Shown piece after piece: positions 1-64,000 of a stretch of DNA of 64,000 bases. This DNA is from Paraphysomonas bandaiensis (lineage: Eukaryota > Protista > Chrysophyceae), in the NCBI GenBank assembly GCA_965644295.1, contig CBFFRP010000078.1, positions 1 through 64,000 on the forward strand, given 5' to 3'. Each line of letters opens with the position of its first letter. Position 1 is the stretch's first letter. A model generated the notes under the pieces. The model was given only the letters and a program-made list of their open reading frames with translations, was not told where the DNA came from and did not search any database. A program made the position numbers and the translations under genes.

Positions 1-1537
1 CCCACAGCCCATCCATCTCATTGGATAGACACTGTATTCCGCATACGGTATACTCGACTACTGTACTACTGTGTCCTACAGGATGTATACCATTCCGTGT
101 ATACCTCTACTGCTGTTGGACACATCACCATGTCCATGTACCTGTCTACCTGTACTGTTGGACACATCACCATGTCCATGTACCTGTCTACCTGTACTGT
201 TGGACACATCACCAGCTCTCTCTCACTGTCCAACACACTCATAACACCACTGCAGTGTCATACACACACACAGTACACTCTACCTCCTCCTAGAAAACCC
301 CCAGACAAACTATCGCCTCTCCCTTACTGGGCGTATTGGTCCACCCACTATTCCTCCTTCCTTCCACAAACTCAATTCCTTCCATCTTATGATGTGTTTT
401 GCTCCAACGATCACTTCTTCCTGGACACCAAATACCCGGTGGAGTTGGAACTACACGCGCTACTCGAGAGAATTCCTGACTTCGTCATCATGCGTCTCCA
501 AAATGTGTTGCAATGTCATTCCAAGGGAATGCAAGGAGTCCACCGTGCCAGGTCCATCAACCATCCCTCCCACGCCCTTCAGGGGAAGGAATTCTCCTCC
601 GATAACAGCGGTGACGGACCTAGCAAATCCACCCACACATTACCCTTATCCACTAAGGATGCCACCACACCGTATGCAACGTTATTTGACTATTTCCCAG
701 TCAAACGGAAGCCACCTACCACCAACCCTACTCAACTGAACACCATGGGAACTCCAGCATTAGCCCCAGACGGCCCATCCTCACTCTCCACTACCACTCC
801 TGACCTCAGGCCGGATGTACTGCCCAAGGATATTGCCACATACCCCCTACACTACACAGAGGGCCGGGGTCACACGCCCTTTCACTCCGATCTGCTGAAC
901 AACTGGGTTAGATATGATGAAACCCAAACCATTGCTGCCTCCCCACAGGGAAACCTTTTAAAAGAAATATACGCACACATGCTATCCCCTGCCTGTTTAG
1001 ACATATGGGAAGGATTCATAGCCAAGGCTTCCAGGACGGACAACTATGATCTCATGATATCATTCACGCTACCAGAGCACAAATTGGACACCACGCACAG
1101 CGCCCTACTAGTTGCCCAGCATCTCGCGAATGGCAACAAACCCTGGGCAGACTCCACTCATGTTGTATCTAGGCATGTGCGGACCCTTTGCCTGACACAT
1201 CTGGAACTAGGTGCACTCAGGACCCTAATTCAGAATGCTGAGCCCCCTCCAAAACCAATGGAGACCCATCCCAAAGGGAGACCCCCAGATCAAAAGCGCC
1301 GGTGAGTCCACGGACACACGATAAAGGCGAATTTCATATCACACAAAAAGAACGGAAGTGGTTGCACCTTGGTGCTTGCGGCGACGCACAAGCAGCTTTC
1401 GTAGCGTTAAATAGTAGGATAAAAGAGTTTGTATTGATTAGTTACGGGTAGTGGTCTAACTAGTATGACTAGCATTCTACTAGCCACTAATTGATGCAAG
1501 GTCTCAACGCCTATTGCTAAATAATCAGACATTCACT
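1..1537 (+). mobile_element. Non-autonomous/chimeric non-LTR retroelement copy (5' end outside window) with ORF 97-1305 ending PKGRPPD and the conserved 3' module
   Basis: 1-310 matches the reverse complement of ~31790-32081. 1255-1537 matches the 3' ends at 30942-31220, 16430-16710 and 63710-63990. Confidence 0.75.
113..213 (+). repeat. 42-bp tandem repeat (~2.5 units)
   Basis: Unit ctgttggacacatcaccatgtccatgtacctgtctacctgta encodes VGHITMSMYLSTCT. The sister copy near 31890-31950 has only ~1.5 units. Confidence 0.85.
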
Positions 1538-1780
1538 ACCTATAACTCTACCTACAGTGTTTTATTTCTAATGCATTGATCATATACTCGCACTATTTAG
1601 AAGTAAAATACTTTTCTCCATACTACCAACTACATTATACGCATAGTACTAGATATACTGTATTACTTCAGAAGCTCAATTGCGAAATGACAACCGCTAT
1701 TGCCTTATTCACGGTGTAATATTTATTTGGGCTTGTGGTTAATTATTGAAGAGCGTGTAGGCAATAGAAGACACATCTAT

Positions 1781-4104: not shown

Positions 4105-4199
4105 TAAATACAATGACCATGTATTTATATTATTGGAGTGTATATCTAGTATACTACCACTATATTGAGGAGCAACTATTATTGAAAGTCTTATTATTA

Positions 4200-5720
4200 G
4201 CAGTAGGAGTCAAGAACTGGCACAAGATAAGTAGTTAGATGAAGACTAGTCAAGCTAGATCGACTTCTACCTGTAACTAACTACCACAAATTCTCATATT
4301 CTACTATTTAACGCTACAGAAGCTGCTTGTGTGTCGCCGCAAGCACCAAGGTTGACCACTTCCGTTGTTGCATGTGAGGGACAAGCTCTCTATGGCGTAA
4401 GTTCTTGAGGTACAGAAGGAATTAGTCAGGGGGGCGCCCGGCACCGCAGGACTTTGTGGAAGAGACACTGTATCAGTGAGTCAAGCGTTCCTAACCGGAG
4501 ATACATGGGGGTAGATTGGAGCTCCGAGTTTTTGAATGGCTCCAGCCCCGAGTTGGGCCTGCTGGGGCAGAGGAGTAGCTGACGGAGTCGGCATCGTGGC
4601 GTCTCCGCTGAGGCGGGGGTAGTGGAAGAGGAAGGCAACCTGAGGGGCGTGTTAGGTCTCCGCTTTACACGTAATAAGCGCAGTACCCGCGGCTTCCGCT
4701 GGGTGTTACTGCATTTAAATCGTGTGTTGGCGCATGTGTGACGCGGTCTGGGGGAAACCCGCGGACTCCACCATGCTTTGCTTCGTGTGTTGCCACGTCG
4801 CTGGCGCGGTTTAGGGGGGAGTCGATGTGGCCCCATAGGTTAGACAGCATGACGACAACTGCGATCCTGGAGCATTTGTTTGGCTGCAGCGTTGAGCGGT
4901 TGAAGAAGGGTAATAACTGCTTTATCGAGGGCACGTAGTCGACGCGAATTTAGGGTGCAGTTGTATCGCGTTCCAAAAAAGCTTTCCATTAGAGCCTCGG
5001 TGTTAGTTCCTGTCCAGAATTGTACAACTTGCGGAAGTGAGATACTCCAGGCTCTTCTGGAGAGTTTCTTGAGAATATGGTACTCCAAGGTGGTAGGATC
5101 AGGTCTCTTTGGATTTTTCGAAGACACTCCTCTTGTGTCTCTGAAAGGCGGATACTCTTATCTGAGAGATGGAGGCGTGTGGAATATCAAGACACATACG
5201 TTTGAGAGAGTCACAAGTGGAAAGCCACAGTCAGCGCATCCGGCTATGTTCAGGCCAAGTACAAATTTTGTTTTAGCCCTATTCCTACCATTGCTGTAGG
5301 ATTTGTCCCATGTAAGGGCTGTATTGAGTATATGCGTTTGTCGTAGTTGACCTTGAATCTACGCAACCTTCCGGGGCCAGTTTATGCGGAAGAAAGGCAC
5401 CGCTATCTTTCCAGTATTATACAGGTGCACGATCCAGATTATGACCGTAGAGTTGTTGGTCAGTGTAATTCTCTAAAGTCCATTGATCGCGAAGAGATTG
5501 GATATCAGTGATCATAGGAGGGTGAGTGATCATACGACCGGCGAATTCCGGACTGACGCCAGCAGTGCCATATTCCGAACGTAAGTATACGTTCCATTAC
5601 TCTGGCATCATCAATTTCACAGAAAAAGTGTAATTGTAAAGGCACAGCATATGATCAACCTCCAACCATTCACGCCCTTCAACCGTGTCTGCTATAATGT
5701 AAATTCCTTTGTCTTCATAA
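4200..5720 (-). mobile_element. 5'-truncated decayed non-LTR retrotransposon (RNase H end, CCHC remnant, GRPPD*, 3' module)
   Basis: On the - strand: DKGIYIIAD (~5700), CADCG (~5230), QFWTG, GRPPD-stop (~4422-4439), 3' RNA motif at 4316-4365. Confidence 0.75.
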
Positions 5721-6594
5721 TAATAATATATTATATATATATATACATATATATATAATATTATGTCCATTGTCAGAGTTTATTTTTTATCAGTCATGCG
5801 ACTCTCTGCAGTTGGTGTGAGCGACCCCAATTAATATTCCTCTTGGTGCACGTTTTGGATGTCCGAGTGCGCGTCGTCGTGTGGAGAGGGCTTCCCCAGT
5901 TCTCATGCACACAGCCTTGCTATCTGTATGTGAGTGCTGTGACATAGTTCATACGCAAACGGATCAATAATATGCTAGAGGTATGTCTTGCAAGGAGCAA
6001 CATTAGTTAATTCAAGTAGGGTGTTGTAGGTTTACAGTTCACTGCAGAGGGAATGGAAATATTTTAGGGTATTGGCCACATTTTTTGTAGTAGTGAATGT
6101 AGCAATAATATTGAAATCTGATTATTATAAGAAGCGCAAGCTTGTGCGTTGCCGTGAGATCAACCTAACAACTCGCGCCACACTAATAAAAGCATATAAC
6201 ACATCAGTTACTATTATTGCATGTACTGACAAAAGTGCTCAACTATACAACACGACTTACTTATAACTACTACACATGATGGGCAACCGACGAGTTGCAT
6301 GTGTAAGCCGAATTATACGCTCCTGTCCAGTCTACTTGTAAATGTATGGGTGAATTAGACCTCTCATTTTCAGTAGTGTGTTAGAGTTGCAAAAGCCAAT
6401 TATTATTGCAATGAAGGCAATTATTATTGCTCGTGCTGTTGATGTTAATTGCAATATAATTGCCACAAAGAGGGTTGCAATTATATTGCAATTAACTGTC
6501 AAAATTAAAATGACGACGTTATTATTTACGCCTCAACCGAACACTGCAGCTGTAGGCGGAATGAGAACGAGAGAACCGTGGATACTATATGATA

Positions 6595-8042: not shown

Positions 8043-8185
8043 GAATGTAGCAATATAGGCGTGTAAGAGACAGAACTAATAAACTGAAACTAGGAACTAC
8101 TGCTTTACTCTGATATCCTTCTATTCAGCGCTACGAAAAAGCTTCTTGTGCATCATCGCAAGCACCAAGGTGCAACCACTACGAC
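8043..8185 (-). mobile_element. Isolated 3' module of the non-LTR family
   Basis: agtggttgcaccttggtgcttgcg...cacaag and cctatattgcta on the - strand. Confidence 0.75.
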
Positions 8186-14859: not shown

Positions 14860-16710
14860 CATTCCCTAACACCTTCTTTGTACTCCATCGACCCCTTTGT
14901 TTGTAAGACGGACCATTTCTTGGCAACCGCACAACCCAACTCCACATGGCCTATACATGGTGCACTCCCCCCGGCTTACCTGTCATCCCTACAGGCTACA
15001 CATCTCAGTGGTATACGCGAATACAGTCACTCTACACAATATATACAGCGTAACACGCTGTACTCTTCCAGTCAATCTCGTCGACTCCACATAACACTAT
15101 CATCACAGCCTTAGCTTATACTTATATGTGCACCTCCTACAACAACCACCTGATACAATGCAACATGGAGCCATTTTCTCTAACAAAAGAACCTACACCT
15201 TGAAGTTTGTTCTCCCTCCTTCCCATCAAAAGTGCCATGTCAAGAGTGCCACATCGGATTTCAAAGCCGACGTGCCCAGACTCCAGCTTCCATCCACTCG
15301 CATGTTCTTGGAATGGAGCAGCTTTGCACCAGCTATAGAATACAGAACCCTAGATGTCAGTAACCTAAAATACAAGATGATACGGCGTTCTTTGGAATTA
15401 TACATTACCTAATCCATGAATTGGGGCTTCCAATTCTACTCCCTACCCCGCAAGACCTAGCTACTTTCAGGGCAGCCGCGAACTTGCTCAGATTTACCTG
15501 CTCCTACGGCGAGCAGAGTAATCCGAGCGCTCGACCTTGGCAGACCTGGGTTCGAAGTCAGGCAGGGTATGGGTCAGAATGTCGCCGCTGATTCATGCAT
15601 GCTCTCAGCGCCTCTTCTACAGATTGAAACTGGCACCTCAGTTGACGACAAAGGGCGTCAACGAACAGAAAGTCGACACATTCAGCTGTCGCTATTCCAA
15701 ACTCCAAGAGATCAATTCGTCGATCGCTCCACGGAGGAACCAACACTGGCATCCGTTGCTGCGATATATGGTTAGTCTGCTGACTCGGTCAGCACTAGGC
15801 CTGCACACGCCTACAGATTGCGGAATATACTGGACATGTTACTTCGGGCAGGAGGTTTTGCCACACTTCCCCCGTACGAAGTATTTTGGACGTTAACTCA
15901 TTTCAAAGGCAAAACGATTCTGCTACAGACAAAACCTATCGTTACTACCACATTCTGCTACTTCACAACCCTTCCCGAGACCAAAACTTAAGAACGCAAT
16001 TCTTCAAAGCGCTATTCAACAACGAAGTTGGTGGACATGTTGAAATCAACCTAGGCTCACCACTGTGTTGACGAATGATAAGCAGTGAAACACCCTCGCT
16101 AAAGCAATCCAACTGGACTCCGACCCTTTCACTATTTCACATCGCCCTTAAGTCGGAAACACTCCTGCCTCCCGTGCAAGTATGGAAAGCATGTGAGGCA
16201 ATAGGGATCCCTACTGCGGATATACAAGACATCATAGGGATAGGACCATAGCACCGGGCCGTATGAAACCATCAGGCCCTAGACAGCGGCGACGCCGTCT
16301 CTGGCAACTCCACCTATACCTGACGCCCAGACGGTGCACGGCGACACCGCCACACCATCAACCTCTCAGCACACACATCTAGTGCTCAGGACCTTAATAC
16401 AGAACCCTGTACCTCAGAGCCTGGCGGAACCTTATCCTAAGGGGAGACCCCCGGACAACTCGCGCCAGTGAGTCCTAAGACACACAAGCAGGGCGAAACT
16501 CACAAACAACATTAAGAACGGAAGTGGTTGCACCTTTGTGCTTGCGGCGACGCACAAGCAGCTTCTGTAGTGCTAAATAGTAGGATAATAGAATTTGTGC
16601 TGATTAGTTATGGGTAGAGGTCTAACTAGTAGATCTAGCATACCACTAGCCACTAGATCGGAACGAGTTTTTAACGCCTATTGCTAAATAAAAAGACTTT
16701 CAATATATAC
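14860..16710 (+). mobile_element. Internally deleted non-LTR retroelement copy
   Basis: 16245-16710 is closely similar to 63510-63990 (PYPKGRPPDN, 3' RNA motif). The 5' boundary is approximate. Confidence 0.65.
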
Positions 16711-17137
16711 AAATATACAGTGTAATTACGTAACGATATTATGCTATAAGATAGATTACGTGTCTACCTAAGATATATTAAAGTATTGGTTGGAAGCTGT
16801 GACAATATTGCGAACGACAATGAACGCTGACGAATGGTTATCGCAATTTTAATGAGTTCAACGTTCAGTCAATTACTTTAAGCTATCCTCACGTCTATTT
16901 CTGATGGATATATTTATAGCACCATTTAGCCGAGTAGCTATTACAGTGTAATGTATTGATTCCGTAACCACTTTTACAATGATATGTGTGAATAATAGTC
17001 ACAAGCACACACAGCAGAATATGAATAGAGTATAACAAACATATCACCTCTATTTACTAGAACCTACATTGTTACATATCTACATCAGTACCATAAACAC
17101 ATTTAATACACACTTTACCTACGTTACGTGCATCATC

Positions 17138-19324
17138 CTATTTCAGTGACAGCAAGGATGCTGCCAAGGTAGCACTAGAGAATTCCATAGAATACGAAGC
17201 CACTGTTCGTAGTCCTTCAGCAATGTAACCTAGCCTCCTATCGTGCTGACTCATTAACTCTACCACACCAGCCACGTAGAGTATAGCATCGTTCGTCTCC
17301 AGTACCGCACATGGCCCTCCCATACCATCACCACATAAGGACGCTGATACCCCTTCAGTTGGTAATACGGGAACACATCCACATGCCATCGCTTCTACAG
17401 CCAACTGACTAGAGGTTTGTACCACTGATAGATCCAGGAAAAAATCACATTTTCGGAGAATATCAGTGGTCTTGAGCTCATTCCCCAAGAAACCAACATT
17501 ATTTCCACCAAGTAGAGACATGTTTACAGACATTCCACCAGACTTAATAGAATTCACCTTGTCCACTAGAAATTGCTTTGATCCAATTATACTTATGTGA
17601 ATCCTCTTCTCGCAGCACTCGAGTAAGCCGAATATCACTTTGACAGCCTCGTCAAAATTCACGCGCACTCCTCGTGAATTTAGATTCACCATGAGGTGGA
17701 ATACTTTTTCCGGGTCAGTGCGGCGCTTCATCATCATTGTGGATTGGTCGACAAAATAAATCTTTCTGTCTAGCGGATGGGAAATGAGGAGAGTGCTGGC
17801 GTTGTATCTGCTCCGGAACTGCTCCCCTACCCATGAGTTCGGTACTATAACCCTCACAGGTTCATCGGATTCTTGCAACAGAGAAGAAAGACAAGAATGC
17901 AGCCTGTCATATGGTGCTCTTAGCTGTTCAGAGAGCGGCAGACTGGTGAAAAGAGGGGGAAGGTGGTCAGATGCGTATAAAACCAGAGGTCGTGACGCTT
18001 TCAGGGATCTATGGGCCAACAATGATTCACATGATTCAGAGACAATCACATCATATGAATCAATCGCAATGGAAGTGTTGCGTAAAAGCAGGCTGTTTAG
18101 TACGTTGGGCTTGATAGACGTCTGATGGACTTTAGGGATTGAATGCAATCGAGGTGATTGCATACTTGCAGTCGACACAAGTGGTGAGCTCTGTATGACA
18201 CTTACCCTTGCACCTCCTTCTGCCATTAATACCATACTATGCAGGCCAGCAGAGCCCCATCCTCTGCTAGTTTCTAGGCCATTCTCACTGTGCCCCACTA
18301 TATACAGCACAGATATATTAAAAGATCCTACAAACCTAGTAGCGTACTCTTTGTAAAGCTGGGCAACGCCTTCAGTTACTGCCCTCATTTTGCCTCTTGC
18401 AGATATGGCAGACGACGAAAATAGCTTGAGATCATCGGCATAGCGGTTCTTTAAAATTTTGTTAGCACGTTGTTTCAACCTATCTCTTGTCGACGTTAAG
18501 AACGAAGCCGTCTTGGTATGGTACAGGTAAACGCTAGGAACCATATAGGCCTTAAAACCTGCCCGCATAACCCTAAGAGAATAATCCACCTCTTCTCCAT
18601 AGCCCGTAGGAAACGACTTTGTATCGAAGCGTCCAACCTTATTGAACACTTCAGCCTTCAGCATCAAGCAAAATCCATTCAGCACAGACAGTCGAATTGG
18701 CTTTAGAGATGCTCCTTTATGGGCTACGTAAGAAGCGAGAGAGTCAACGCTCAGACCTGGAGGAAGAGGGTTAGTGGCCCACTTGCCACTGCTCTTCAGA
18801 TCAGGAATAGATTGATATGTTGCAGCATTGGAGATGGGACCCACCATCATTATTCGGTTTTGTGACATTAGAACAGAGAACAGGCTCTCTAGCCAACCAT
18901 TAGTAACCACAATATCAGAATTGAGAAGCACAACAGCAGACGGATTTTTACCAGTGTAGGATAGAGCAAAGTCGATTCCTTTCTGCACAGCATGTGTGTA
19001 GCCACGCCTGAATTCCGTTGTCTGCAAACATTGGAAGTCCTTTTGAAACTTCATACATAGCTCACGTTGATATGAAATCGTTTCCTTTTTACTTCCGTCA
19101 TCAACAAAAATAACTTTCTGACAGAGAACATTTCTGGGGGGGCGATGACGAATAAGAGACTCGACGCAGGACTGTATCACTTCTTTCGGGGTCTTCACAG
19201 ATATAACAATGAACACTGTACCAAGAAACCGCTGTGGCTGGACGGAAACTGCGGTAGAAAGACAACACGGGTGGGAGAGAAGAGTACTCAGAAGCAGTAC
19301 TAAAGCGGGGATCCAACTAACCAT
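17138..19324 (-). CDS. Intronless signal-peptide-bearing glycosyltransferase with GT2 (GT-A) and GT4-like (GT-B) domains
   Basis: GT2 motifs FVDDGS, LLNSDIVV, VGPISN, NGFCL and GYGEEVDY. GT4-like motif VEAMACGCVPV. Hydrophobic N-terminus. Confidence 0.85.
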   Translation of the reverse strand: MVSWIPALVLLLSTLLSHPCCLSTAVSVQPQRFLGTVFIVISVKTPKEVIQSCVESLIRHRPPRNVLCQKVIFVDDGSKKETISYQRELCMKFQKDFQCLQTTEFRRGYTHAVQKGIDFALSYTGKNPSAVVLLNSDIVVTNGWLESLFSVLMSQNRIMMVGPISNAATYQSIPDLKSSGKWATNPLPPGLSVDSLASYVAHKGASLKPIRLSVLNGFCLMLKAEVFNKVGRFDTKSFPTGYGEEVDYSLRVMRAGFKAYMVPSVYLYHTKTASFLTSTRDRLKQRANKILKNRYADDLKLFSSSAISARGKMRAVTEGVAQLYKEYATRFVGSFNISVLYIVGHSENGLETSRGWGSAGLHSMVLMAEGGARVSVIQSSPLVSTASMQSPRLHSIPKVHQTSIKPNVLNSLLLRNTSIAIDSYDVIVSESCESLLAHRSLKASRPLVLYASDHLPPLFTSLPLSEQLRAPYDRLHSCLSSLLQESDEPVRVIVPNSWVGEQFRSRYNASTLLISHPLDRKIYFVDQSTMMMKRRTDPEKVFHLMVNLNSRGVRVNFDEAVKVIFGLLECCEKRIHISIIGSKQFLVDKVNSIKSGGMSVNMSLLGGNNVGFLGNELKTTDILRKCDFFLDLSVVQTSSQLAVEAMACGCVPVLPTEGVSASLCGDGMGGPCAVLETNDAILYVAGVVELMSQHDRRLGYIAEGLRTVASYSMEFSSATLAASLLSLK

Positions 19325-19451
19325 ATTGATAGGAAAGTGCTATATAGGCAATTGCTGGGTCTACAACCATTTACGTTCGGCTGACATGGTGGTTAGATGA
19401 AATAAGGCAACACACTGAATTCTATGTTGTTGTTATTATGTTGTTATGTTA

Positions 19452-21008
19452 GTATGTATGTATGAATGTATGTATGTATGTATGTATGTATGTATGTATG
19501 TATGTATGTATGTATGTATGTATGTATGTATGTATGTATGTATGTATGTATGTATGTATGTATGTATGTATGTATGTATGTATGTATGTATGTATGTATG
19601 TATGTATGTATGTATGTATGTATGTATGTATGTATGTATGTATGTATGTATGTATGTATGTATGTATGTATGTATGTATGTATGTATGTATGTATGTATG
19701 TATGTATGTATGTATGTATGTATGTATGTATGTATGTATGTATGTATGTATGTATGAATGTATGTATGTATGTATGTATGTATGTATGTATGTATGTATG
19801 TATGTATGTATGTATGTATGTATGTATGTATGTATGTATGTATGTATGTATGTATGTATGTATGTAGGTAGGTAGGTAGGTAGGTAGGTAGGTATGTATG
19901 TATGTATGTATGTATGTATGTATGTATGTATGTATGTATGTATGTATGTATGTATGTATGTATGTATGTATGTATGTATGTATGTATGTATGTATGTATG
20001 TATGTATGTAGGTAGGTAGGTAGGTAGGTAGGTAGGTATGTATGTATGTATGTATGTATGTATGTATGTATGTATGTATGTATGTATGTATGTATGTATG
20101 TATGTATGTATGTATGTATGTATGTATGTATGTATGTATGTATGTATGTATGTATGTATGTATGTATGTATGTATGTATGTATGTATGTATGTATGTATG
20201 TATGTATGTATGTATGTATGTATGTATGTATGTATGTATGTATGTATGTATGTATGTATGTATGTATGAATGTATGTATGTATGTATGTATGTATGAATG
20301 TATGTATGTATGTATGTATGTATGTATGTATGTATGTATGTATGTATGTATGTATGTATGTATGTATGTATGTATGTATGTATGTATGTATGTATGTATG
20401 TATGTATGTAGGTAGGTAGGTAGGTAGGTAGGTAGGTAGGTAGGTAGGTAGGTAGGTAGGTAGGTAGGTATGTATGTATGTATGTATGTATGTATGTATG
20501 TATGTATGTATGTATGTATGTATGTATGTATGTATGTATGTATGTATGTATGTATGTATGTATGTATGTATGTATGTATGTATGTATGTATGTATGTATG
20601 TATGTATGTATGTATGTATGTATGTATGTATGTATGTATGAATGTATGTATGTATGTATGTATGTATGTATGTATGTATGTATGTATGTATGTATGTATG
20701 TATGTATGTATGTATGTATGTATGTATGTATGTATGTATGTATGTATGTATGTATGTATGTATGTATGTATGTATGTATGTATGTATGTATGTATGTATG
20801 TATGTATGTATGTATGTATGTATGTATGTATGTATGTATGTATGTATGTATGTATGTATGTATGTATGTATGTATGTATGTATGTATGTATGTATGTATG
20901 TATGTATGTATGTATGTATGTATGTATGTATGTATGTATGTATGTATGTATGTATGTATGTATGTATGTATGTATGTATGTATGTATGTATGTATGTATG
21001 TATGTATG
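19452..21008. repeat. (TATG)n microsatellite with (TAGG)7, (TAGG)7 and (TAGG)15 blocks
   Basis: Directly visible. TAGG blocks at 19865-19892, 20009-20036 and 20409-20468. Confidence 0.99.
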
Positions 21009-21295
21009 CGCAGAGAAAAATACGGTACTCGGTCGAATGTTACGGATGTTACAAATCAATAAACGGACGGAATACCCCCGTTGCTTTCACACAGTCTACA
21101 CTACAGGTAGTCAAAGCAAGGTTCTCTTTATAGTTACTACAGAACTTCTCAGTAAGAGGAAATTATGCCTCTATTCTACAGCCGTACACTACACACTGCA
21201 TAATATAACACCATACACCTCTATGTGCCCTATGCATATCTTATACAGTCACTTCAAGTACTAAACTGAAAAGAACATCCTCTCATTCCTCTACG
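21009..21295 (-). repeat. 3' LTR
   Basis: Direct repeat of 25710-25996, preceded on the - strand by a short purine tract AGGGG. Confidence 0.95.
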
Positions 21296-25709: not shown

Positions 25710-25996
25710 CGCAGAGAAAAATACGGTACTCGGTCGAATGTTACGGATGTTACAAATCAATAAACGGACGGAATACCCCCGTTGCTTTCACACAGTCTAC
25801 ACTACAGGTAGTCAAAGCAAGGTTCTCTTTATAGTTACTACAGAACTTCTCAGTAAGAGGAAATTATGCCTCTATTCTACAGCCGTACACTACACACTGC
25901 ATAATATAACACCATACACCTCTATGTGCCCTATGCATATCTTATACAGTCACTTCAAGTACTAAACTGAAAAGAACATCCTCTCATTCCTCTACG
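25710..25996 (-). repeat. 5' LTR
   Basis: Direct repeat of 21009-21295, ending 12 nt before the ATG. Confidence 0.95.
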
Positions 25997-26654
25997 TATG
26001 TATGTATGTATGTATGTATGTATGTATGTATGTATGTATGTATGTATGTATGTATGTATGTATGTATGTATGTATGTATGTATGTATGTATGTATGTATG
26101 TATGTATGTATGTATGTATGTATGTATGTATGTATGTATGTATGTATGTATGTATGTATGTATGTATGTATGTATGTATGTATGTATGTATGTATGTATG
26201 TATGTATGTATGTATGTATGTATGTATGTATGTATGTATGTATGTATGTATGTATGTATGTATGTATGTATGTATGTATGTATGTATGTATGTATGTATG
26301 TATGTATGTATGTATGTATGTATGTATGTATGTATGTATGTATGTATGTATGTATGTATGTATGTATGTATGTATGTATGTATGTATGTATGTATGTATG
26401 TATGTATGTATGTATGTATGTATGTATGTATGTATGTATGTATGTATGTATGTATGTATGTATGTATGTATGTATGTATGTATGTATGTATGTATGTATG
26501 TATGTATGTATGTATGTATGTATGTATGTATGTATGTATGTATGTATGTATGTATGTATGTATGTATGTATGTATGTATGTATGTATGTATGTATGTATG
26601 TATGTATGTATGTATGTATGTATGTATGTATGTATGTATGTATGTATGTATGTA
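25997..26654. repeat. Pure (TATG)n microsatellite
   Basis: Directly visible. Confidence 0.99.
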
Positions 26655-26689
26655 TTCTTGCGTTATTTATGGTGACCTCTGAATGATGC

Positions 26690-30552: not shown

Positions 30553-30941
30553 GCCGTGGTGCTAACACCTGGAGGCTTGCGTGCAGAGATCTCTGCAGTA
30601 AAGTTTGGAAACCGATAGTTTAATTACAAAGCACTTACGTATTTCAGTTGGTAATACTTGTTATGATAATCATTTCCCTGTTGACTTTCAACATTATTTT
30701 AATTGAGTGAGGGCAGTTGACTGCTAAGAATCCACTATCGCATACGAGATGAATAGGGCACGACGTTATATTGTATGTTTAGGAAGTGTAGTACACATAC
30801 ATATTTACGTATTTGCACTCCGGATATCGAGCTACAGGTATCTGTGCATCACCAATATTTTGAAATACGAGGACATTGTCAAGGACCATCACCACAAATT
30901 ATAATGCATACATTCACTTCGGTTTGTTGGGTACTACAGTA

Positions 30942-32590
30942 TATTGAATGTCTGATTATTTAGCAATAGGCGTTGAAAGCCTGCACCAATTAGTGGCTAG
31001 AAGAATGCTAGTCATACTAGTTAGACTACTACCCGTAACTAATCAATACAAACTCTTTTATCCTACTATTTAACGCTACAGAAGCTGCTTGTGCGTCGCC
31101 GCAAGCACCAAGGTGCAACCACTTCCGTTCTTAGTGTGTGTTATGAGGCTCGCCATGATCGTGTGTCCTGGGACTCACCGGCGCGTGTGATCTGGAGGTC
31201 TCCTCTTGGGATGAGACTCCACTCGCTATATGATAGATAGCCTTATGTACCTCACGGGGACTGACTTATTAGCCTTATGGCAGTTAGGGGAAACAGTAAT
31301 ATGCCCTTCTGAGATTGGCGATCTGGTGGCCTTCCTTTAGGCATTGTTCCAAGTGGCTCGGAGGTATGTGGATGAAGGTCTTGCAAAAGGTTATGGCCTA
31401 CTGTGAAGAAGCGTCGAAATCGGCTCTTTTGCTGTCTTAGCCAGCGGTAGAGAACACATGCAAGAGGGTGTATAGCTGTACAGGGGTGGGATGTGAGGGT
31501 CATCCGGTGTGTCCAGCTACAGGGAGTCGAGAGGGAGTGTGATGGTGCAAGAGAGGCAACATCTGATTGAGGGGAGTGAGACTGCGCAACAGAACAAGAG
31601 TCACTGAGGTCGAGTACTCTGATAGACCTATGCACGAGATGATCGTGATGATGATGATGGTCTGGAGGAGACACTCGGACGTCCTCAGCTGCTCTTGTTA
31701 GTGTCTGTGTTGGTGCAGGGGGTACAGACTGAGGCATAGAGAGTGTGTGTAAGGAAGATGACGGCAAGGTATCAGAGACGAAGGGAGGGGAGATGGTTTG
31801 TCTGGGGGTTTTCTAGGAGGAGGTAGAGTGTACTGTGTGTGTGTATGACACTGCAGTGGTGTTATGAGTGTGTTGGACAGAGAGAGAGAGCTGGTGATGT
31901 GTCCAGCAGTACAGGTAGACAGGTACATGGACATGGTGATGTGTCCAACAGCAGTAGAGGTATACACGGAATGGTATACATCCTGTAGGACACAGTAGTA
32001 CAGTAGTCGAGTATACCGTATGCGGAATACAGTGTCTATCCAATGAGATGGATGGGCTGTGGGGGTGATAGGTGAACAGGGTGAGGGGGTAGCCTGCTGG
32101 GTGGATGGACCACAGACAAACCATGTTGGGTTGGGCTGGGTTGTCGTCAGGAGACGGCCCTGTTGTGCAGTGGAGAGGTGTCGAGAGGAGACAGGGGTTG
32201 CAGAGAAGGTACATGGGGGCCGTTTGCGTGGATCTGCTCGCACGAGCCATGCTGTAAGTGGTTGTATCCGTAGAGAACCGTGTAGGAGACGAAGGTGTCT
32301 CCTTAGGTGATAGCATATGCATGCGGTCAGCGCTGCATTGGTGCAGGCACGTTGTTTAACTGAAGTAGTTGAGTAGGGTGAAGGTTGCAAGGCCAGGCAG
32401 GGGGACTTGGAGCGTGTACAACATGGTGTGACAGGTAATTTGTCGGAAGCGTGGTGGTCAACAAAATGCAGCAGTAAGGGAGTGTAAAAGGCCCTGGGCA
32501 CACTGATGTGACTCAGCCACGGTCTCAATAGAGACATTGGGCTTGGAGCTGGTTAATAGGGTGAAACTTTATGTTGGACTGTATTTGCCA
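30942..32590 (-). mobile_element. Non-autonomous/chimeric non-LTR retroelement copy, sister of 1-1537
   Basis: Shares the 5' block and 3' module with 1-1537 but has a different middle. Two RPPD motifs. The 5' boundary is approximate. Confidence 0.75.
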
Positions 32591-38094: not shown

Positions 38095-40775
38095 AATTGA
38101 TCAATTTTCCAGTCCGAGTTGTTTGCAAAATTGCCATCTGCTACCATGTCAAGATTTGACATTTAAAGAATTGAGATAGAACACTGAACGACAAAAGTAA
38201 ACTTATTATAATCAAAATATCTCCTATCATTCATCAATTTCATAATATATAATTATTATGATCTCTACAACGACCACTCATTTCTCATACGATCTTACGT
38301 CGTGACCACATATTTCCGTTTTACTACTATAATATCTATAGATAACATCGTCATGATATATATCATTTCTCATATATATAATATATTATATACAGCTCAT
38401 CACTACGGTATACTCTAATATAAGAAAGTCTGATTATTACACGAGAACGGTTGTGTACAGAAACTAGTTTTACATCTACTAACTAAAAACTGGACTTGCT
38501 ATATACTCTACTAGAGTGGCGGGCAACCGTCTCTGGACTGCTTGTGCATCGCTGCGAGCACTATATGATGCAACTGTCCCTTGTTGTAGTGAGGTTAGTC
38601 GGGGGTTTACCCTTGGGCAATGTGTCTGGCGGGCATGATGTGCCATGGGTTATGTGAGGAGTGGATAAGGCGAGATGTATATGAGTGTATGTCGGCGGTG
38701 GAGATGGTGCTGGTTGTCGAGGTGGGGTTTCGGCCACAAGTAAGGAGTAATTGTTTCGCTTGACTCTGTCGGGAGTAGGATAGAGGTGATGGATTTTTCG
38801 AGGGCGTGGAACTGAAATTCGAGCAGTGAGCTAGATATGTGGTCCGAATTCGTCGTCGGCCAATTGTGTGGCAGTAATGTGGCTGGGGGGTGTTTGGATT
38901 CCATGCGGCTTTTTGCTAGTTTGATTATGGCGGTGTGAAACCTGGGATGGGGGAGCGTGCGTGTGCGAAGTTTGTCAAGCTTATTGTGGTGTACTTGGTG
39001 GACATATTCTCGTATGTGAGTGAGGTCAGGGGGTGCGCAGGTGAGAAGCATGTGCGCCAATGATGTCGTTGTCTGTTTTGGGTCTGTGCATATGCGGAAG
39101 CCGTTGTGTGATCATGCCCGGTTTTTCCTATAGTTCTGTTTCTTCCAATTGCGTATGATACGTCCCATACGTATATGTAGTAGTAGTTTTTGGAGGAGCC
39201 ACCCGTGAAGTTAGCTTTTTGTAGAGGCGTGCTCTTGTGATCGTTGAACAGAGTTGGAGCTGTGATTGAACTTTGTCAATATAGTAGCTCGGAGAAGTGT
39301 TGCGTAGCTGGGGAGAGGGAGGCTGTAGTATGATGCCTAGTTGCCCCCATTGTACCCCAGGCTGGTGATGTACATGTCGACGTCTTGGGGGGGGGGGTGC
39401 TCGTAGCGTTGTAAAAGAGTGGCCGCACTCTTGGGCTGTTCTCTGAGTGTGAGGGCTCGTTGAAGAGTATGCCATTTTTGAGTCTGGGCGTGGTTGAAAA
39501 TTTGCGCATTCCAAGCCCTTTGTATTTCGTGGGAAGGTAGATAAGATCCGTGGGATATTCATGGGGGAGAAGGAGTATTTTTCTAGCGGCCTTTGCGAGT
39601 AGTTTGTCTATATGTCGATGTATTGGCATATATATGTCCAGCAGGATGATTTGGTGGCCTTTTATAGTAGGGTCGGGAGTATATATGTGTGTTGAGGACT
39701 ACGAGTAGCTTGCAATCAGGTGTCGCACATTTTTGGAACGTAGAGAACTGCCGTGGATTTGGCTATATATGTAGTTGGCGCACCATATATCTGTGGGAGT
39801 CAGTGTTTTTAACTGAGAATGGAAGTTGTACGCCGAGGTACTTGTTGGTGGAATTGTGGTTGTTTGGATGGGGATGGGGTGTGGGCACCAGTTCCAGTCT
39901 CTTATATATGATGATGTGTGGGTTTGACTCTAGCGTGGCCGTCACCGCAAATGGGGCTCCCAAGGCTATACGTATTCAGTTTTTGGAATGTTGAGTTGCA
40001 TCCCGGAGAAGGCGCAGAATGATGATAGCTTGTCAGTCTTGAGCTGAGTGACCTCAATGGAGGTTGTGATTTGGGAGAGGTCATCTGCGGTCGCCTCATC
40101 TTGGCTATCATCACATCATCATGTAAGTCAGACCAGCATAGATAGGTCATGTCAAAGATGACTATCCATGCAACTATTGATTCTGTTCCGCCTTATGTAG
40201 CCCCTCTCTCCGCGGAGAATTCCATGTCAGGGTGCTGGATAAAGGAGCCATCATCTGAGCCAAGCAGTTCTTCTAGTGATCGGGGATCGATGTGGTCAGC
40301 CATGTGTCAGCCATGTGTGGGGCCCAGAACAGATGAAGGTGCGACCCCCATCGTCGAGGTCGCTTTTTGTCCACTTCACTACAAGCAACCTTTTAGACAA
40401 ACGTGGGAAAAATATTCCCACGCTGCTTTGTACCCATTTGTACCCTATCCTATATATTATGTAACATTAAATTGATCAAATTTTGGAAGCTGTTTCCAGT
40501 CCGAGTTGTTTGCAAAATTGCCATCTGCTACCATGTCAAGATTTGACATTTAAAGAATTGAGATAGAACACTGAACGACAAAAGTAAACTTATTATCATC
40601 AATATCTTCTATCTTTCATCAATTTCATAATATAATTATTATTATCTCTAAAACGACCACTCATTTCTCTTACGATGTTACGTCGTCGTCACAATATCCT
40701 TTATGCCACATATTTCCGTTTTACTTCTATAACATTATCTATATTATTATAGACAACATTGTGTCATGATATATA
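38095..40775. repeat. ~270-bp direct repeat pair (38095-38365 and 40470-40775)
   Basis: Shared tttccagtccgagttgtttgcaaaattgccatctgctaccatgtcaagatttgac... block. Confidence 0.85.
38400..40350 (-). mobile_element. Decayed non-LTR retrotransposon (RT motifs, CCHC remnant, 3' module)
   Basis: GGTESIVAWIVIFD, ATADDL, GMQLNIPKT, KYLGVQL, LIYLPTKYKGLG, AHMLLTC and PKGKPP(D). RNA motif at 38535-38580. Confidence 0.85.
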
Positions 40776-41498: not shown

Positions 41499-44400
41499 GA
41501 CGAGGTAATACCAAAAAAAACTGGTACAGCGATTTCACCAGGTTTCATAATAATATAATATATCTAATTAAAAGTGTGTTGTGTGTTAACATTTTTCAAT
41601 GTAATTTTTGTATCTGAGAGGTTAAAGATAAAGAAAAAGTCGCAATTATAGCTGTTATATATTAGAAGTATTATTTATGGAGTTACAAGTTGGCCCTTTT
41701 TGCTACTCTTGTGTATTGTAATAAAATATTATCATATTCTCATATTATATATAGTAGCTTCATAATATTATTGCAAACGCTCCAACCGAGTAGCCTGATT
41801 CAGGATACATTGCATATAGTCATATATAGCTATCTCCACTACTACTGCATGCGCTAGAAACAGAACCCACCATAACCATTAGAGACTGGAACTGGAACCC
41901 GCACACCATCCCCATTAGAGCCACCACAGTCCCCACCAAATACCTCGGAATCCTACTCCCGTTCTCCTCGAAGGACACCGACTCGCACGCCTGGTGTGTC
42001 GACTACGTCACCACCTCCGCAACACATCTTCGCTACAAATGTGCATCCCCAGACTGTAAACTGTTAGTGCTTAACACACAAGAGTACTCCCGACACTACT
42101 CTACAAAGCCACCAAAGCCTCCTGGACGTACGACAGATACCTGGACATAGACAAACTCCTTGCACGAGCAGCCAGGAAAGTCCTCCGACTACCCCCAGGA
42201 TACCCCACAGTCCTCATCTATCTGCCCACGAAATACAAAGGACTTGGCCTGCGTAAGTTCTCCACACATGGGCCCAGACCCAAAAGTGGCACACACTCCA
42301 AAGGGCCATCACCCTGGGAGGGGGAACCCAAGCGAGCCGCCATATCCATCTTACAACGTCACGATCACAATCGCCCAGAGACATCGACCTTTACATCACT
42401 AGCCTGGTCCAATGGGGACAACAGCTCGGAATTCGACTGCAGCCCCCATCCCCGGCCACGCCCCAATTCCGAGAAACCATCGACAAGGTCCAATCCCAAC
42501 TCCAACTGCACAACAATCATCCACACGATTTTCAAGCCATCTTCACTGATGGTTCCTTCACTCGCACAAACCTCTCACCTGCTCATCTCCTCGGTGGTGC
42601 TCACGTACAGCCCGCAACACACTACGGGGGGGCAGCAATTGTCTGGCTCCCACCCAAAACCAACTGGAGCACAGGAATTACCAAAATCCTTCGACTTACA
42701 GCCCCCGAGCATACCTTACCCGGGATAACCCCATACACCTACGAGACCCTGGCAATGTCAGCAGCCCTCACGTTCTCGAAACTCGTCTCCTCCACCGTAC
42801 CTATGTGCACCGACTGCCAAGCAGTCCAAACACGAACCACGGAAGCTCTCTCTCTCGTCGGCGGCGGGCCCTCGGCACAAAGCCCCAGGGCATCTTTTAC
42901 GAATGCCTCGCCACAGGAAATCACCGACAGCGACCAATCCGATGGGTCCGCTCCCATCCAGAACGCCGAACACAAGATCGGAACAACTGGACCTACAACG
43001 ACTATGGCATCTACATAGCTGACGCTGCCGCCAGTGGAGAGTGGTCGGCGATCGACAAAATACTAGGCGGCACAAACTACAGCGTGGTCACGACTGAGAT
43101 CACACACCTCATCGACGAATTCCTCACTGCCGGCCAATGGCAATGGAGAAGATACGACAAATTCCTCCACACCGACTGTGGACCCATGCTAGGGGATGTC
43201 ACCGAACTCCAACACCAATGGGACCTCCACCAATACATCCTCACGCGTGACGGCACGTACTCCGCAAGCGCAAGCCGAGACTCGCAGTACTGGACACACA
43301 GGGGCACCAGGCTCCCACACAAACTTCATCCTCTCAAGCCCAATAATTCGTCCAACTGCTATGTCCCATTCCACGACCGCATCCGCGAAACTGCATATGT
43401 CTGGGACAAATCATACGCGATGGGCAGAAATAGGGCCAAGGGCAAACATGGAGACGAACTCACAACAGCAGCCAAATGCACGGACTGTGACCACAACCTG
43501 GACAACATGGCGCATATGCTCCTCCACTGTCCACACCCTGAGATCGCCCAACTACGTGAACATGCCTTCCACACACAGCAAACCCAGCTTACAAAACTCC
43601 ACGGGCAACGACAACCCATCCCCTGGCTCCACACCGCCCTACAAAGACTGGCGAGGGCTGCCTGGGATCCCACCACACCCCAGGTTGAGAGATACTGGAC
43701 CGGACAACTAACAGCCTCGCAACTGGCAAATGCTTTCGGACACAACATCTCCACCACGTTGCACGACCACCAGTTCCATAAACTCGAGAAATCCGTCACC
43801 AAAGTCCTGCTCCCCCTCTACAATGGAGGAATAAACATGCTCAAAAACAGAGGATGTCAATTTCACAGTAACGATGTGACAACAATGACACCAACCTCGA
43901 CTCATGCCAGCTCACAACCACGTCACACATACCCTACTACCAACCCGACGATCCTCCAGCTACTTAAAGCAACATCCACCCCCAGAGCCGTGCCCCACAC
44001 GAGACCCCTCCCCCAACGCAGGCCTGTCAACCCGATCCGGAGGCAGACAACACTCATTTCCGACAGAACCGCAACCACAACTAGTACTCCCAATAAAACC
44101 TCCGCTGACACACATCCACAGAATGGCACGTCACCCCCCACACCCCGACTCGCATGCGGATATGGACCACCAGACACACTACCCAAAGGACGACCACCAG
44201 ACTAAACTTAAAACAAGGGATGGTTGCACCAAGGTGCTTGCAGCAATGCACAAGCAGTCCCGAGATAACTGAGCATTTCATATTTTGTGTTACAATTAGT
44301 CTAAAGTAATAGATAGATAAATGCAACAAGTTCTCTCATGTAATAATCAGATCTAATTATATACTACTGCATGCAATATTCACCAGGTTTTGGTATATTA

Positions 44401-60892: not shown

Positions 60893-61290
60893 AGACTCAC
60901 ACCTTTTCGTGGTGTTCTGATGATATAGCAATGTACCGGATATATTTCTGAGGAAACTAACGTGAGCTGAATTATATATAGTCAGCAGATATTGTTCTGC
61001 CCAATTATATCCAAGTGCTTGTTTGGTACAAATGACACTTTTATTAGTCTACAAGGATCATTTGTGTAGACGACTTTGGGTTCCTGACGAATAAACAGTC
61101 AGACATCCGGGAATGGGTCCACCTTAAGGACAGCGAGAAAGTGGTTGCACCTTGCTACTTGCGGTGACGCTCATGTAGCTTTCGTGGCGCTAAATGGTAG
61201 GATATCAGAGGTAAGCACTAGCTAGTTAAATTGTTTTGCTACACTAGTTCAGACTCTTACACGCCTATTGCTAATAATCAGGCATCCACT
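60893..61290 (+). mobile_element. Short chimera: Copia-like fragment fused to the non-LTR 3' module
   Basis: 60893-61128 matches parts of 62093-62420. 61137-61290 is the 3' module. Confidence 0.7.
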
Positions 61291-62079: not shown

Positions 62080-63992
62080 CTCAACAAAGTCGGACTCACA
62101 CCATTATTTTGTGGTGTTCTGATGATATAGCAATGTACCGGATATATTTCTGAGGAAACTAACGTGAGCTGAATATACCACACAAGCACTTGGCTATATA
62201 TAGTCAGCAGATATTGTTCTGCCCAATTATAGCCAAGTGCTTGTGTGGTACAAAGGACACTTTTTTACTAGTCTACAAGGGTCACTTCTTGTGTAGACGA
62301 CTTTGGGTTCCTGACGAATAAACAGTCAGACACCGGGAATGGGCCCACCTTTATAGGGTAACCGGGATATTGGGCTGCCTGCTAAAGTTAAGCATCCGGG
62401 AAAGGATCCACCTTAAGGATTCAACAACCCTGAAGTCAGCAGATGCATGTCAGGTATATCAACATTCTGCTAGCTCATTGCGTTTGCTCTGAGTGATTGA
62501 TACCGAGTAAGAGATCACATTATTCGGTATCTGTGTAGCCAATGACGGAGGCAATGCGTCAAACATTACTCATGGATGCATCATGGCAATGACAATGGGA
62601 TTAGACCTGTTATATCTTCCCACACGTCCACTGCCTAGTCTTGGTTTCTCATGAACCCGGTCATTGAGATTACAACAAGGCCCTGGCACTGTTCTCCAAG
62701 CAGTGTCAGGTACATTTGTGGTGCTTTTATATTATTCTTGCTTTTCCTACTCTAGCGTGTAGGATATTGGACACATAGAGTGGGGCACTGCTTCTGCGTA
62801 AACTGGCACAAGCAGATGGTGGTCCATCAAAGGATAAAGTTAGTTCCCACCTACGCCAGCGAGTACTCAATGCAGCATTGACATGGGACAAATCTTTCAG
62901 CATAGGAAGAAACCGGGCTAAAACCAAACACGGACTCGACCTGGCCAAAGCCGCATGTTCTGACTGCGGATTTTGACTAGACTCACTCAAGCACATGTGT
63001 CTAGACACTGTACAAATGACGCCATCACGCAGATAAGGGAGTCTGCATTTCACAACCACAATAACGCGCTTCACGAAGTACTGAGAAATCCGGTACTACC
63101 CCAATGGACCACCACTGCACTACAGCGGCTCTCCAGCAGGGCCTGGAATCCCGCCGTTCCACAGGTAGAGAGATTCTGGACAGGTACCATCACCACTACA
63201 CAACTCGAGACGGTTTTTGGAGATCACATCCATGAGTCATTGACACCCCAGAGACTGCGCAACATCGAATCAGCGGTCATCAGATTGCTTCTACCGCTTT
63301 TCGCTGCAGCAAAGCTAATGATCCAAGATCGAAGTAGAAGATACGTTACCCTACAGAAAGGACCCCCTAGGCTACTACCGCGACCGCGCCCAAAACATAG
63401 ACAGAAATGGAAACGCCCAAGGGTGCTACGATTACTAGGAATTCACAGATGAACCGAGACTGGAACACTGCCCACCACACATAGGAACCCCCCCAGTCAT
63501 ACACTTAGGACCACAGCACCGGACCGCATGACATCATCAGGCCCTAGACAGCGACGCCGTCTCCGGCAACTACACCTATGCGCGACGCTCAAACGGTGCA
63601 CGGCGACTACGCCACAAACCACCACACCACTCACCTCACAACACGCACATCTAGTGCTCGGTACACTTAGGACCTTAATGCATAACCCTGTGCATCAGAG
63701 CCTGGTGGAACCTTATCCCAAGGGGAGACCCCCGGACAACACGCGCCAGTGAGTCCTAAGACTCACGAGCAGGGCGAAAATCACAAACAACATCAAGAAC
63801 GGAAGTGGTCGCACCTTGGTGCTTGCGGCGACGCACAAGCAGCTTCTGTAGCGCTAAATAGTAGGATAATAGAATTTGTGCTGATTAGTTATGGGTAGAG
63901 GTCTAACTAGTATGTCTAGCATTCAACTAGCCACTATATTGGCACGAGTTTTTAACGCCTTTTTGCTAAATAAAAAGACTTTCAATATATAC
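62080..63992 (+). mobile_element. Copia-like fragment (62080-62730) abutting a 5'-truncated non-LTR copy (~62740-63992)
   Basis: CSDCG, PQVERFWTG and PYPKGRPPDN. RNA motif at 63799-63849. Confidence 0.8.
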
Positions 63993-64000
63993 TAGCGTGT

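Follow-up and report, generated by a model that had tools for sequence, protein, structure and literature searches.

The window, by which we mean the whole 64-kb stretch of DNA analyzed here, belongs to a source assembly of 62.5 Mb in 669 contigs. At its left end, an open reading frame (ORF) on the forward strand (97..1305) is followed by a structured motif at 1352..1402, which begins 47 nt 3′ of the stop codon, and a second conserved box lies downstream at 1520..1539. The motif is 45 to 50 bases long (a module of ~48 nt) and had originally been predicted at ten sites in the window. We built a covariance model, R1, from an alignment of those ten sites and scanned the window on both strands with filtering turned off. 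The scan returned exactly the ten sites, at scores of 43.8 to 78.2 bits (E values of 6e-18 to 6e-9), and the next-best match in the window had an E value of 0.32. Since R1 recovers these ten and no others, the list of sites is complete and specific for the window, and the motif was also read in the sequence at each of them. The features of the window are given below. Type names are those of the carrier elements described in the next section, and P3 denotes the GCAC/GUGC hairpin.

97..1305, + strand: ORF of an internally deleted LINE-A, with 99 to 100% identity to a 3021-aa LINE ORF
1352..1402, + strand: motif copy of LINE-A type with closing stem ACGGAAGU/GCUUUCGU and loop GCGA (R1, 75.2 bits)
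1520..1539, + strand: 3′-terminal box AATAATCAGACATTCACTAC; element end at ~1535-1542, with loose contig ends at 1535 and 1542
4316..4365, - strand: motif copy of LINE-A type with a decayed P3 region (GGUCA-ACC) (R1, 62.7 bits)
4172..4198, - strand: terminal box of the 4316 copy (box pattern)
6134..6178, - strand: motif copy of the D type with a closing helix of 9 bp (GCGCGAGUU/AAGCUUGCGC) and a GCAA loop; P3 hairpin absent, inner spacing atypical (R1, 46.7 bits)
6100..6126, - strand: terminal box, 7 nt after the D-type motif (box pattern)
8133..8182, - strand: motif copy, SINE type, decayed, with loop GAUGAU and a closing-stem 5′ strand that is not complementary (R1, 58.4 bits)
16518..16568, + strand: motif copy, LINE-A type (R1, 76.9 bits)
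16687..16713, + strand: terminal box (AATAAAAAGACTTTCAATAT) of the 16518 copy (box pattern)
31078..31128, - strand: motif copy, the best-scoring variant and the commonest in the genome (at least 150 identical sites) (R1, 78.2 bits)
30934..30960, - strand: terminal box of the 31078 copy (box pattern)
38535..38580, - strand: motif copy of LINE-C3 type (GGGAC/GUCC) whose P3 loop contains an insertion (R1, 43.8 bits)
38412..38438, - strand: terminal box of the 38535 copy (box pattern)
42805..44205, + strand: C-terminal ORF fragment of LINE-C1 with a CxxC...HxxxxC motif (genome search), ~94 to 95% identical to copies in open frames of up to 3731 aa and 43% identical to LINE-A
44217..44261, + strand: motif copy of LINE-C1 type (GGGAU/GUCCC, GCA-GCAA-UGC) that starts 11 nt past the stop codon (R1 match)
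44342..44368, + strand: terminal box of the LINE-C1 copy (box pattern)
61137..61185, + strand: motif copy in a SINE-like element (60894-61273), with several substitutions, a variant unique in the genome (R1 match)
63799..63849, + strand: motif copy of a LINE-A sublineage that has C in place of U12 (GGUCGCACC) (R1, 75.8 bits)
63969..63995, + strand: terminal box of the 63799 copy (box pattern)

The motif is present in at least 1,000 to 1,500 copies genome-wide. Exact patterns for its 5′ and 3′ halves matched 1076 and 1469 times, respectively, and reversed-pattern controls for both halves gave 0 matches in the genome, which excludes a chance origin.

Carrier elements and their 3′ ends

Two ORFs in the window stop just before a motif and have the C-terminal sequence PKGRPPD in common. 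Pfam searches of the ORFs beside the window's motif copies returned no domain and no reverse transcriptase (RT), and the element type was therefore settled from full-length elements elsewhere in the genome. A genome search with ORF 42805-44205 led to copies within open frames of up to 3731 aa. Two full-length elements were fetched, one with an ORF of 3731 aa (type C1) and one with an ORF of 3021 aa (type A), and the motif follows each. Pfam finds SET, Exo_endo_phos (APE endonuclease), and RVT_1 domains in each ORF, and among solved structures the RT region is closest to human L1 ORF2p (E of ~5e-7). Because of this domain content and RT relationship, the carriers are classed from sequence as APE-type non-LTR retrotransposons (LINEs). 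The original prediction had assigned the motif to the 3′ UTR of a non-LTR family; that assignment holds through the full-length elements, although no copy in the window itself adjoins an RT. A literature search found no published SET-bearing LINE.

Twenty further 3′ ends were fetched, anchored solely by the end of the protein match, and all 20 had the motif, placed at the same offset from the stop codon. In these ORF-anchored ends and in the full-length elements, the motif starts 11 to 47 nt 3′ of the stop codon. The C-terminal regions of LINE-A and LINE-C are 43% identical over 340 aa, and their 3′ UTRs showed no similarity in blastn. LINE-A and LINE-C nevertheless both keep the motif core and the terminal box, and within the 3′ UTR they alone are conserved across lineages.

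Elements without the full coding capacity also carry the motif. Residues 1 to 367 of ORF 97-1305 correspond to aa 196 to 562 of the 3021-aa ORF and residues 367 to 402 to its last 36 aa, joined in frame; SET, APE, and RT are deleted from this element. A SINE-like family of ~560 nt has no LINE coding sequence and has its motif, tail, and 3′ end in common with LINE-A; the window copies at 61137 and 8133 belong to short elements of this kind. The D lineage is a third, divergent type with 142 genome copies. D-type patterns with two other spacings had 4 and 0 matches in the genome. The ORF-less SINE-like elements and the D type each keep the motif in more than 100 copies.

The second conserved box, AATAATCAGAY...TTCAATAT, stands at the very 3′ end of the elements, which continue for 8 to 170 nt past the motif to reach it. 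Thirty type-A copies can be aligned for ~145 nt past the motif and diverge after ...AATAATCAGACATTCAATAT or ...CACTAC. Type C3 copies end ~120 nt past the motif, at ...AATAATCAGACTTTCATATA, and types C1 and C2 have similar ends. Of the 10 motif copies in the window, 8 are followed on the same strand, at 7 to 170 nt, by a match to a relaxed box pattern (A[AT]TAA[TA][CA]AGA[CT]), and the strict form (AATAAT[CA]AGAY) occurs 7 times in 64 kb, 6 of them after a motif. The layout of the 3′ UTR is thus the stop codon, 11 to 47 nt, the motif, a variable tail, the terminal box, and the end. In LINE-A and LINE-C, the motif sits 75 to 145 nt from the 3′ end, and it adjoins the box (7 nt) in the D type only. 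The original statement that copies end without poly(A) was right as to the tail, since the ends of copies carry none, but the ends do not lie at or near the motif: the elements close not with the stem-loop but with the box, in TATAT-like letters.

Structure and covariation

The structure alignment comprised 93 R1 matches from the window and the fetched loci, 72 of them distinct, and two folds were scored on it. All five modeled pairs of the closing stem vary on both sides, and 90% of cells are paired across the 72 sequences, part of which were gathered by selecting unusual 3′ strands, a choice that enriches variants and cannot create matching 5′ strands. The whole-structure covariation score was 0.303, compared to 0.153 ± 0.008 for shuffles (0 of 500 reached 0.303), in an alignment where many sequences are dead, interrelated copies and shuffle statistics overstate independence. 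With partners slid by 1 to 3 columns, the score was 0.07 to 0.10. The closing-stem covariation noted in the ten window copies is also present in the larger alignment.

At least five versions of the closing stem are present in multiple copies: GGAAGU/GCUUCY, GAAAGU/GCUUUC, GGAGGU/GCCUCC, GGGAY/GUCCC, and GCGCGAG/CUUGCGC. The GGAGGU/GCCUCC version has ~40 copies (among 11 inspected, the 5′ strand matches in 6 and differs by a G-to-A change in the rest), and the GCGCGAG/CUUGCGC version has 142. Each pairing named in the original prediction was found (CGGAAGU/GCUUCUG, CGGAAGU/GCUUUCG, GAAAGU/GCUUUC, GGGAU/GUCCC, GGAC/GUCC, and GCGCG/UGCGC). The closing stem tolerates single mismatches, because uncompensated multi-copy variants exist, with GCAUUCG and GCGUUCG 3′ strands opposite CGAAAGU. 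GAAUGU variants of the 5′ strand have 12 copies in the genome.

A second helix, capped by a GNRA loop, also covaries. The pair under the loop is G-C in 50, A-U in 16, and G-U in 4 of the 72 sequences and tracks LINE lineage, with GCG-GNRA-CGC in type A and GCA-GNRA-UGC in type C; the corresponding GCG/CGC-to-GCA/UGC swap had been reported for the window copies and is present in them. Tetraloops in multi-copy lineages are GCGA, GUGA, GCAA, GAGA, and GUAA, closed by G-C or A-U, and non-GNRA loops are found in single decayed copies. GCGA, GCAA, and GUGA are the loops that the original prediction listed for the window, and GAGA was found elsewhere in the genome. A further swap listed there, UGC/GCA to UAC/GUA, occurs only in the 61137 copy; because that variant is unique in the genome, we rejected the swap as evidence of covariation, and the double change may reflect random decay. 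The closing stem is topped by a U-G pair in 57 of the 72 sequences. Since this pair would read A-C on the opposite strand, the fold belongs to the sense-strand RNA.

The inner part of the motif showed no covariation in the 72 sequences. Its lower stem UGCUU/AAGCA and the GCAC/GUGC hairpin are each ~92 to 93% paired, owing to invariance, and covariation cannot decide between a long hairpin and a three-way junction. In 7 of 7 lineage sequences, the minimum-energy fold was the three-way junction, 3.5 to 4.8 kcal/mol better than the long hairpin. Above the closing helix of this junction come a G-A mismatch and an extension of 3 bp (GUU/AGC), followed by the hairpins GCAC-CNNG-GUGC and UGCG-GNRA-CGCA. 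The GCAC/GUGC hairpin, which the original prediction had mentioned as a possible alternative, is thus part of the lowest-energy fold in all seven; the closing stem and the GNRA hairpin of that prediction stand, but its single long hairpin with an AC bulge is energetically disfavored. The point between GCACC and GGUGC is the exact site of at least five independent insertions, a pattern expected of a hairpin loop. In the D lineage, the G-A mismatch is replaced by A-U, the closing helix runs on via GUU/AAC... as 9 bp, and the UGCUU/AAGCA lower stem is unable to form. Against the junction, the change of U12 to C in an abundant sublineage breaks one extension pair, and the D lineage does without P3, a part that is not universally required. 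Folding z-scores were unremarkable (-0.4 to -2.4) and not significant for most copies. Energy modeling, the insertion sites, and the extended D-type helix make the three-way junction the probable fold of the motif.

The function proposed below could also be served by a single long hairpin, UGCUU-GCG-GNRA-CGC-AC-AAGCA, in which GGUUGCACCUUGG would be an unpaired protein-binding loop. RNAalifold returned this fold for the ten window copies, its lower stem is paired in 93% of cases over the 72 sequences, and the double change in the 61137 copy preserves that stem. This double change is, however, the sole one in support of the hairpin and sits in a genome-unique variant, and in each of the 7 lineage sequences the hairpin carries the energy deficit given above. 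The D lineage (142 copies) pairs AAGC with GUU to extend the closing helix, as the junction predicts, and the independent insertions between GCACC and GGUGC point to a hairpin loop at that position. We consider the long hairpin possible but doubtful, and the three-way junction is the fold used in the model that follows.

Occurrence in RNA contigs and databases

RNA runs were compared as assembled contigs, from which RNA ends, strand, and cleavage are not readable. Contigs containing the region 600-1700 came from marine metatranscriptomes, both poly(A)-selected and random-primed, and from runs labeled with three coded organisms. Contig depth over the first element of the window peaks at the motif. 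Many contigs break at 1348-1356 and have differing upstream sequence, as expected if many families share the motif, and contigs also break at 1535-1542, which is the element end. All four runs contained a contig joint linking 629 to 1203, a sequence arrangement that points to a further deletion variant.

A search of the window and 17 loci against Rfam 15 at the gathering score gave no match, in keeping with the original description of a structured RNA of no known class. With E values of up to 10 allowed, the 1200-1600 region had only a chance match to an lncRNA, and a search by E value on one SINE head gave nothing relevant; no HDV-like ribozyme was seen at the head of the SINE copies inspected. 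Covariance models of known self-cleaving classes (hammerhead, HDV-like, twister, twister-sister, pistol, and hatchet) did not match. The strict motif pattern had 0 matches in metagenome contigs. With a looser pattern of 18 bases there were at least 120 metagenome and 5 viral matches, which were attributed to chance; all were rejected by R1, one of them being a partial match at E = 0.007. Homologues of the LINE C-terminal region were limited to six short ENA contigs, and the three scanned (P0001, P0002, and P0006) carried the same or nearly the same motif variants and no new diversity. Across the metagenome, viral, and ENA contig searches, no homologue of the motif was found outside this organism's own sequences. 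A literature search found no paper joining the terms non-LTR, GNRA, UTR, and retrotransposition.

Proposed function and relation to known elements

From sequence comparison and by analogy with studied retrotransposons, we propose that the element's own protein probably reads a two-part signal in the 3′ UTR and that the motif is the part it binds. The motif would act in cis within the 3′ UTR of these APE-type LINEs, a clade whose members have one giant, SET-bearing ORF. It would form the structured upstream half of the signal and the terminal box the other half. The ORF protein is predicted to bind the folded motif on the sense RNA, recognizing the closing helix, the GNRA-capped short helix, and, most likely, GCAC-CNNG-GUGC as the third hairpin of a three-way junction. 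Such binding would pick the RNA as a template, and the terminal box would then be positioned at the nicked target for target-primed reverse transcription (TPRT); binding would thus fall to the motif and initiation to the box. Internally deleted LINEs and the ~560-nt SINE-like elements keep both motif and box and would in this way borrow the LINE machinery. Which protein recognizes a given RNA would depend on lineage-specific letters in the closing stem, in the P3 loop (UU, AA, or AU), and at the G-C or A-U pair below the GNRA loop. RT recognition, one of the two functions originally suggested, fits all of the comparative evidence, namely, the position of the motif, the deleted LINE, the SINE-like carriers, and the lineage-specific letters. 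Counting against RT binding, the LINE motif lies 75 to 145 nt upstream of the 3′ end, unlike classical stem-loops.

That distance, together with a start only 11 to 47 nt past the stop codon, an odd site for RT entry, would suit a post-transcriptional signal of the LINE mRNA, acting through host proteins in stability, nuclear export, localization, or translation termination, with the derivatives as passive carriers. The region is also found in contigs of poly(A)-selected metatranscriptomes; such RNA may occur in cells, contigs being no proof of transcription. Retention of the motif by the ORF-less SINE-like elements and the D type, at more than 100 copies each, makes a link to translation hard to sustain, although stability or export would still fit, and the lineage-specific stems and loops track the lineage of the LINE protein. 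We regard a host-read mRNA signal as unlikely. The other originally suggested function was a catalytic or 3′-processing RNA. Ribozymes are known in other retroelements, and the compact junction-type fold, the strongly conserved unpaired GGUUG and CACAAGC, and the lack of an Rfam match could be read as those of an undescribed small self-cleaving or processing RNA. However, no hammerhead, HDV-like, twister, pistol, or hatchet match appeared even at E values of up to 10, and the D lineage, which lacks a third of the fold, is still abundant. All inserted copies run continuously from the ORF or the SINE body through the motif and its downstream tail to the terminal box, indicating that the template RNA is uncut at the motif. 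Contigs, which cannot show RNA ends, have no preferred break inside the motif. Cleavage or processing by the motif is the least probable of the functions considered. Only slightly less improbable is that the motif is a new small three-way-junction RNA class with an activity of its own, such as conditional cleavage or a switch between the mutually exclusive long-hairpin and junction folds that would gate translation versus reverse transcription of the giant LINE mRNA; were this so, the motif would not simply be a passive tag for protein binding.

The preferred reading, recognition of the motif by the element's own protein, opens no new category of biology. Its interest lies in a clean natural data set on template choice by LINEs that are not of the L1 type: the copies number more than 1,000, come in at least five stem versions, and belong to two autonomous and several parasitic lineages. 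The host is a marine protist of a little-studied clade, and its LINEs are unusual in having a single ORF of 3,000 to 3,700 aa with a SET domain. The layout, with a module past the stop codon and a separate terminal box, departs from the textbook stem-loop in the 3′ tail. As R1 marks the 3′ ends of the whole LINE/SINE superfamily, its use would better the repeat annotation of this genome.

Two known systems frame the proposal, along with human L1. In R2, the parts of the RNA on which binding depends overlap with those required to initiate TPRT and to position the template, but the two sets are not identical (PMC11194090); the two-part arrangement of motif and box matches this partial separation of determinants. 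Like the R2 3′ UTR RNA, which is selected by R2's own protein (PMC10499050, PMC11194090), the motif forms a multi-helix region of the 3′ UTR. R2 is site specific, uses a restriction-like endonuclease, and has a ~250-nt fold in its 3′ UTR, whereas the elements described here have an APE endonuclease, dispersed insertions, and a ~48-nt module, and the motif has no sequence or Rfam similarity to the R2 3′ UTR. The APE and RT architecture is that of human L1 ORF2p (PMC10830416); L1, a LINE of the relaxed type, chooses its template via the poly(A) tail, in contrast to the specific structured signal of elements that have no poly(A).

In LINEs of the stringent type, the cognate ORF2 binds a 3′ stem-loop that is required for mobility (PMC4176376, PMC1636434). 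As in eel UnaL2/UnaSINE1 and zebrafish ZfL2-1/ZfL2-2 (PMC1636434, PMC4176376), a conserved 3′ UTR structure is common to the LINE and its non-autonomous partners, poly(A) is absent, the stem is kept by compensatory change, and lineage-specific letters could set cognate recognition. Unlike the stem-loops of those elements, which lie in a conserved 3′ tail near the 3′ end and are often followed by short tandem repeats, the motif stands directly past the stop codon, probably folds as a GNRA three-way junction rather than a single hairpin, and is accompanied by a separate terminal box at the 3′ end. The LINE clade is also a different one, found in a protist and marked by a giant, single SET-bearing ORF. 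The overall pattern, a structured 3′ UTR element, no poly(A), sharing with non-autonomous elements, and lineage-specific letters, matches that of the stringent-type LINEs. The recognition principle is already well known in those elements, and the motif is a new example of it.

Terminal box and tail of the 3′ untranslated region

Downstream of the folded motif, the 3′ untranslated regions of the LINEs carry a second conserved block, the terminal box, in which AATAAT[CA]AGAY precedes a run of about 10 AT-rich bases. This box marks the true 3′ end of the element in every lineage, the divergent D type among them, and in several insertions extra TA repeats lie beyond it.

Terminal boxes in the window
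1520-1539
4172-4198
6100-6126
16687-16713
30934-30960
38412-38438
44342-44368
63969-63995

The type-A tail also holds additional self-complementary segments, GUGGUCUAACUAG...CUAGCCAC, found at 1403-1500 in the window and at about 1550-1650 in 30 type-A copies fetched from the genome (L001-L030). These segments are conserved within type A and absent from types C and D.

Motif copies with a mismatched closing stem

In several copies of the motif, the closing stem has a 5′ strand that bears no relation to its 3′ strand. Examples are the copy at 8133-8182 of the window and the genome matches G000:C12:52796, C13:1560, and C15:15645. The sequences look as if 5′ truncation had fallen right at the motif; reverse transcription might therefore be prone to halt there, at the motif in its folded or protein-bound form.

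Other coding sequences in the window

The window has two further open reading frames (ORFs).

17138-19324, minus strand: ORF of 728 amino acids with family-2 glycosyltransferase domains
21312-25697, minus strand: Copia-type ORF of 1,461 amino acids with RVT_2 and a zinc knuckle

The first, which also has a weak, subthreshold family-1 glycosyltransferase match, appears to be a host gene surrounded by repeats. The Copia-type ORF is bordered by 287-bp direct repeats (21009-21295 and 25710-25996; 100% identical), probably the LTRs of a young insertion, outside which are long, near-identical tandem arrays with a subperiod of 4 to 8 nt (19285-21008 and 25993-26655).

Autonomous LINEs and an internally deleted LINE-A

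The autonomous elements are LINEs with a single giant ORF each, of 3,021 and 3,731 amino acids, in which a SET/PR-type lysine methyltransferase domain lies a short way upstream of the APE endonuclease. Full-length ORFs were located in loci fetched from elsewhere in the genome.

L043:874-9936, minus strand: full-length giant LINE ORF
L041:615 to L042, plus strand: full-length giant LINE ORF

Within the window these LINEs are present only as fragments, at 97-1305 and 42805-44205. The former is a LINE-A derivative with an in-frame internal deletion that removes amino acids 563 to 2985 and leaves an open frame of 402 codons; RNA-library contigs from four runs contain a further joint within it, 629-1203, that skips 573 nt. 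In the N-terminal part of its ORF, a 42-nt tandem repeat (113-238; 2.6 copies) encodes the repeated peptide TVGHITMSMYLSTC, as it does in the full-length LINE-A element.
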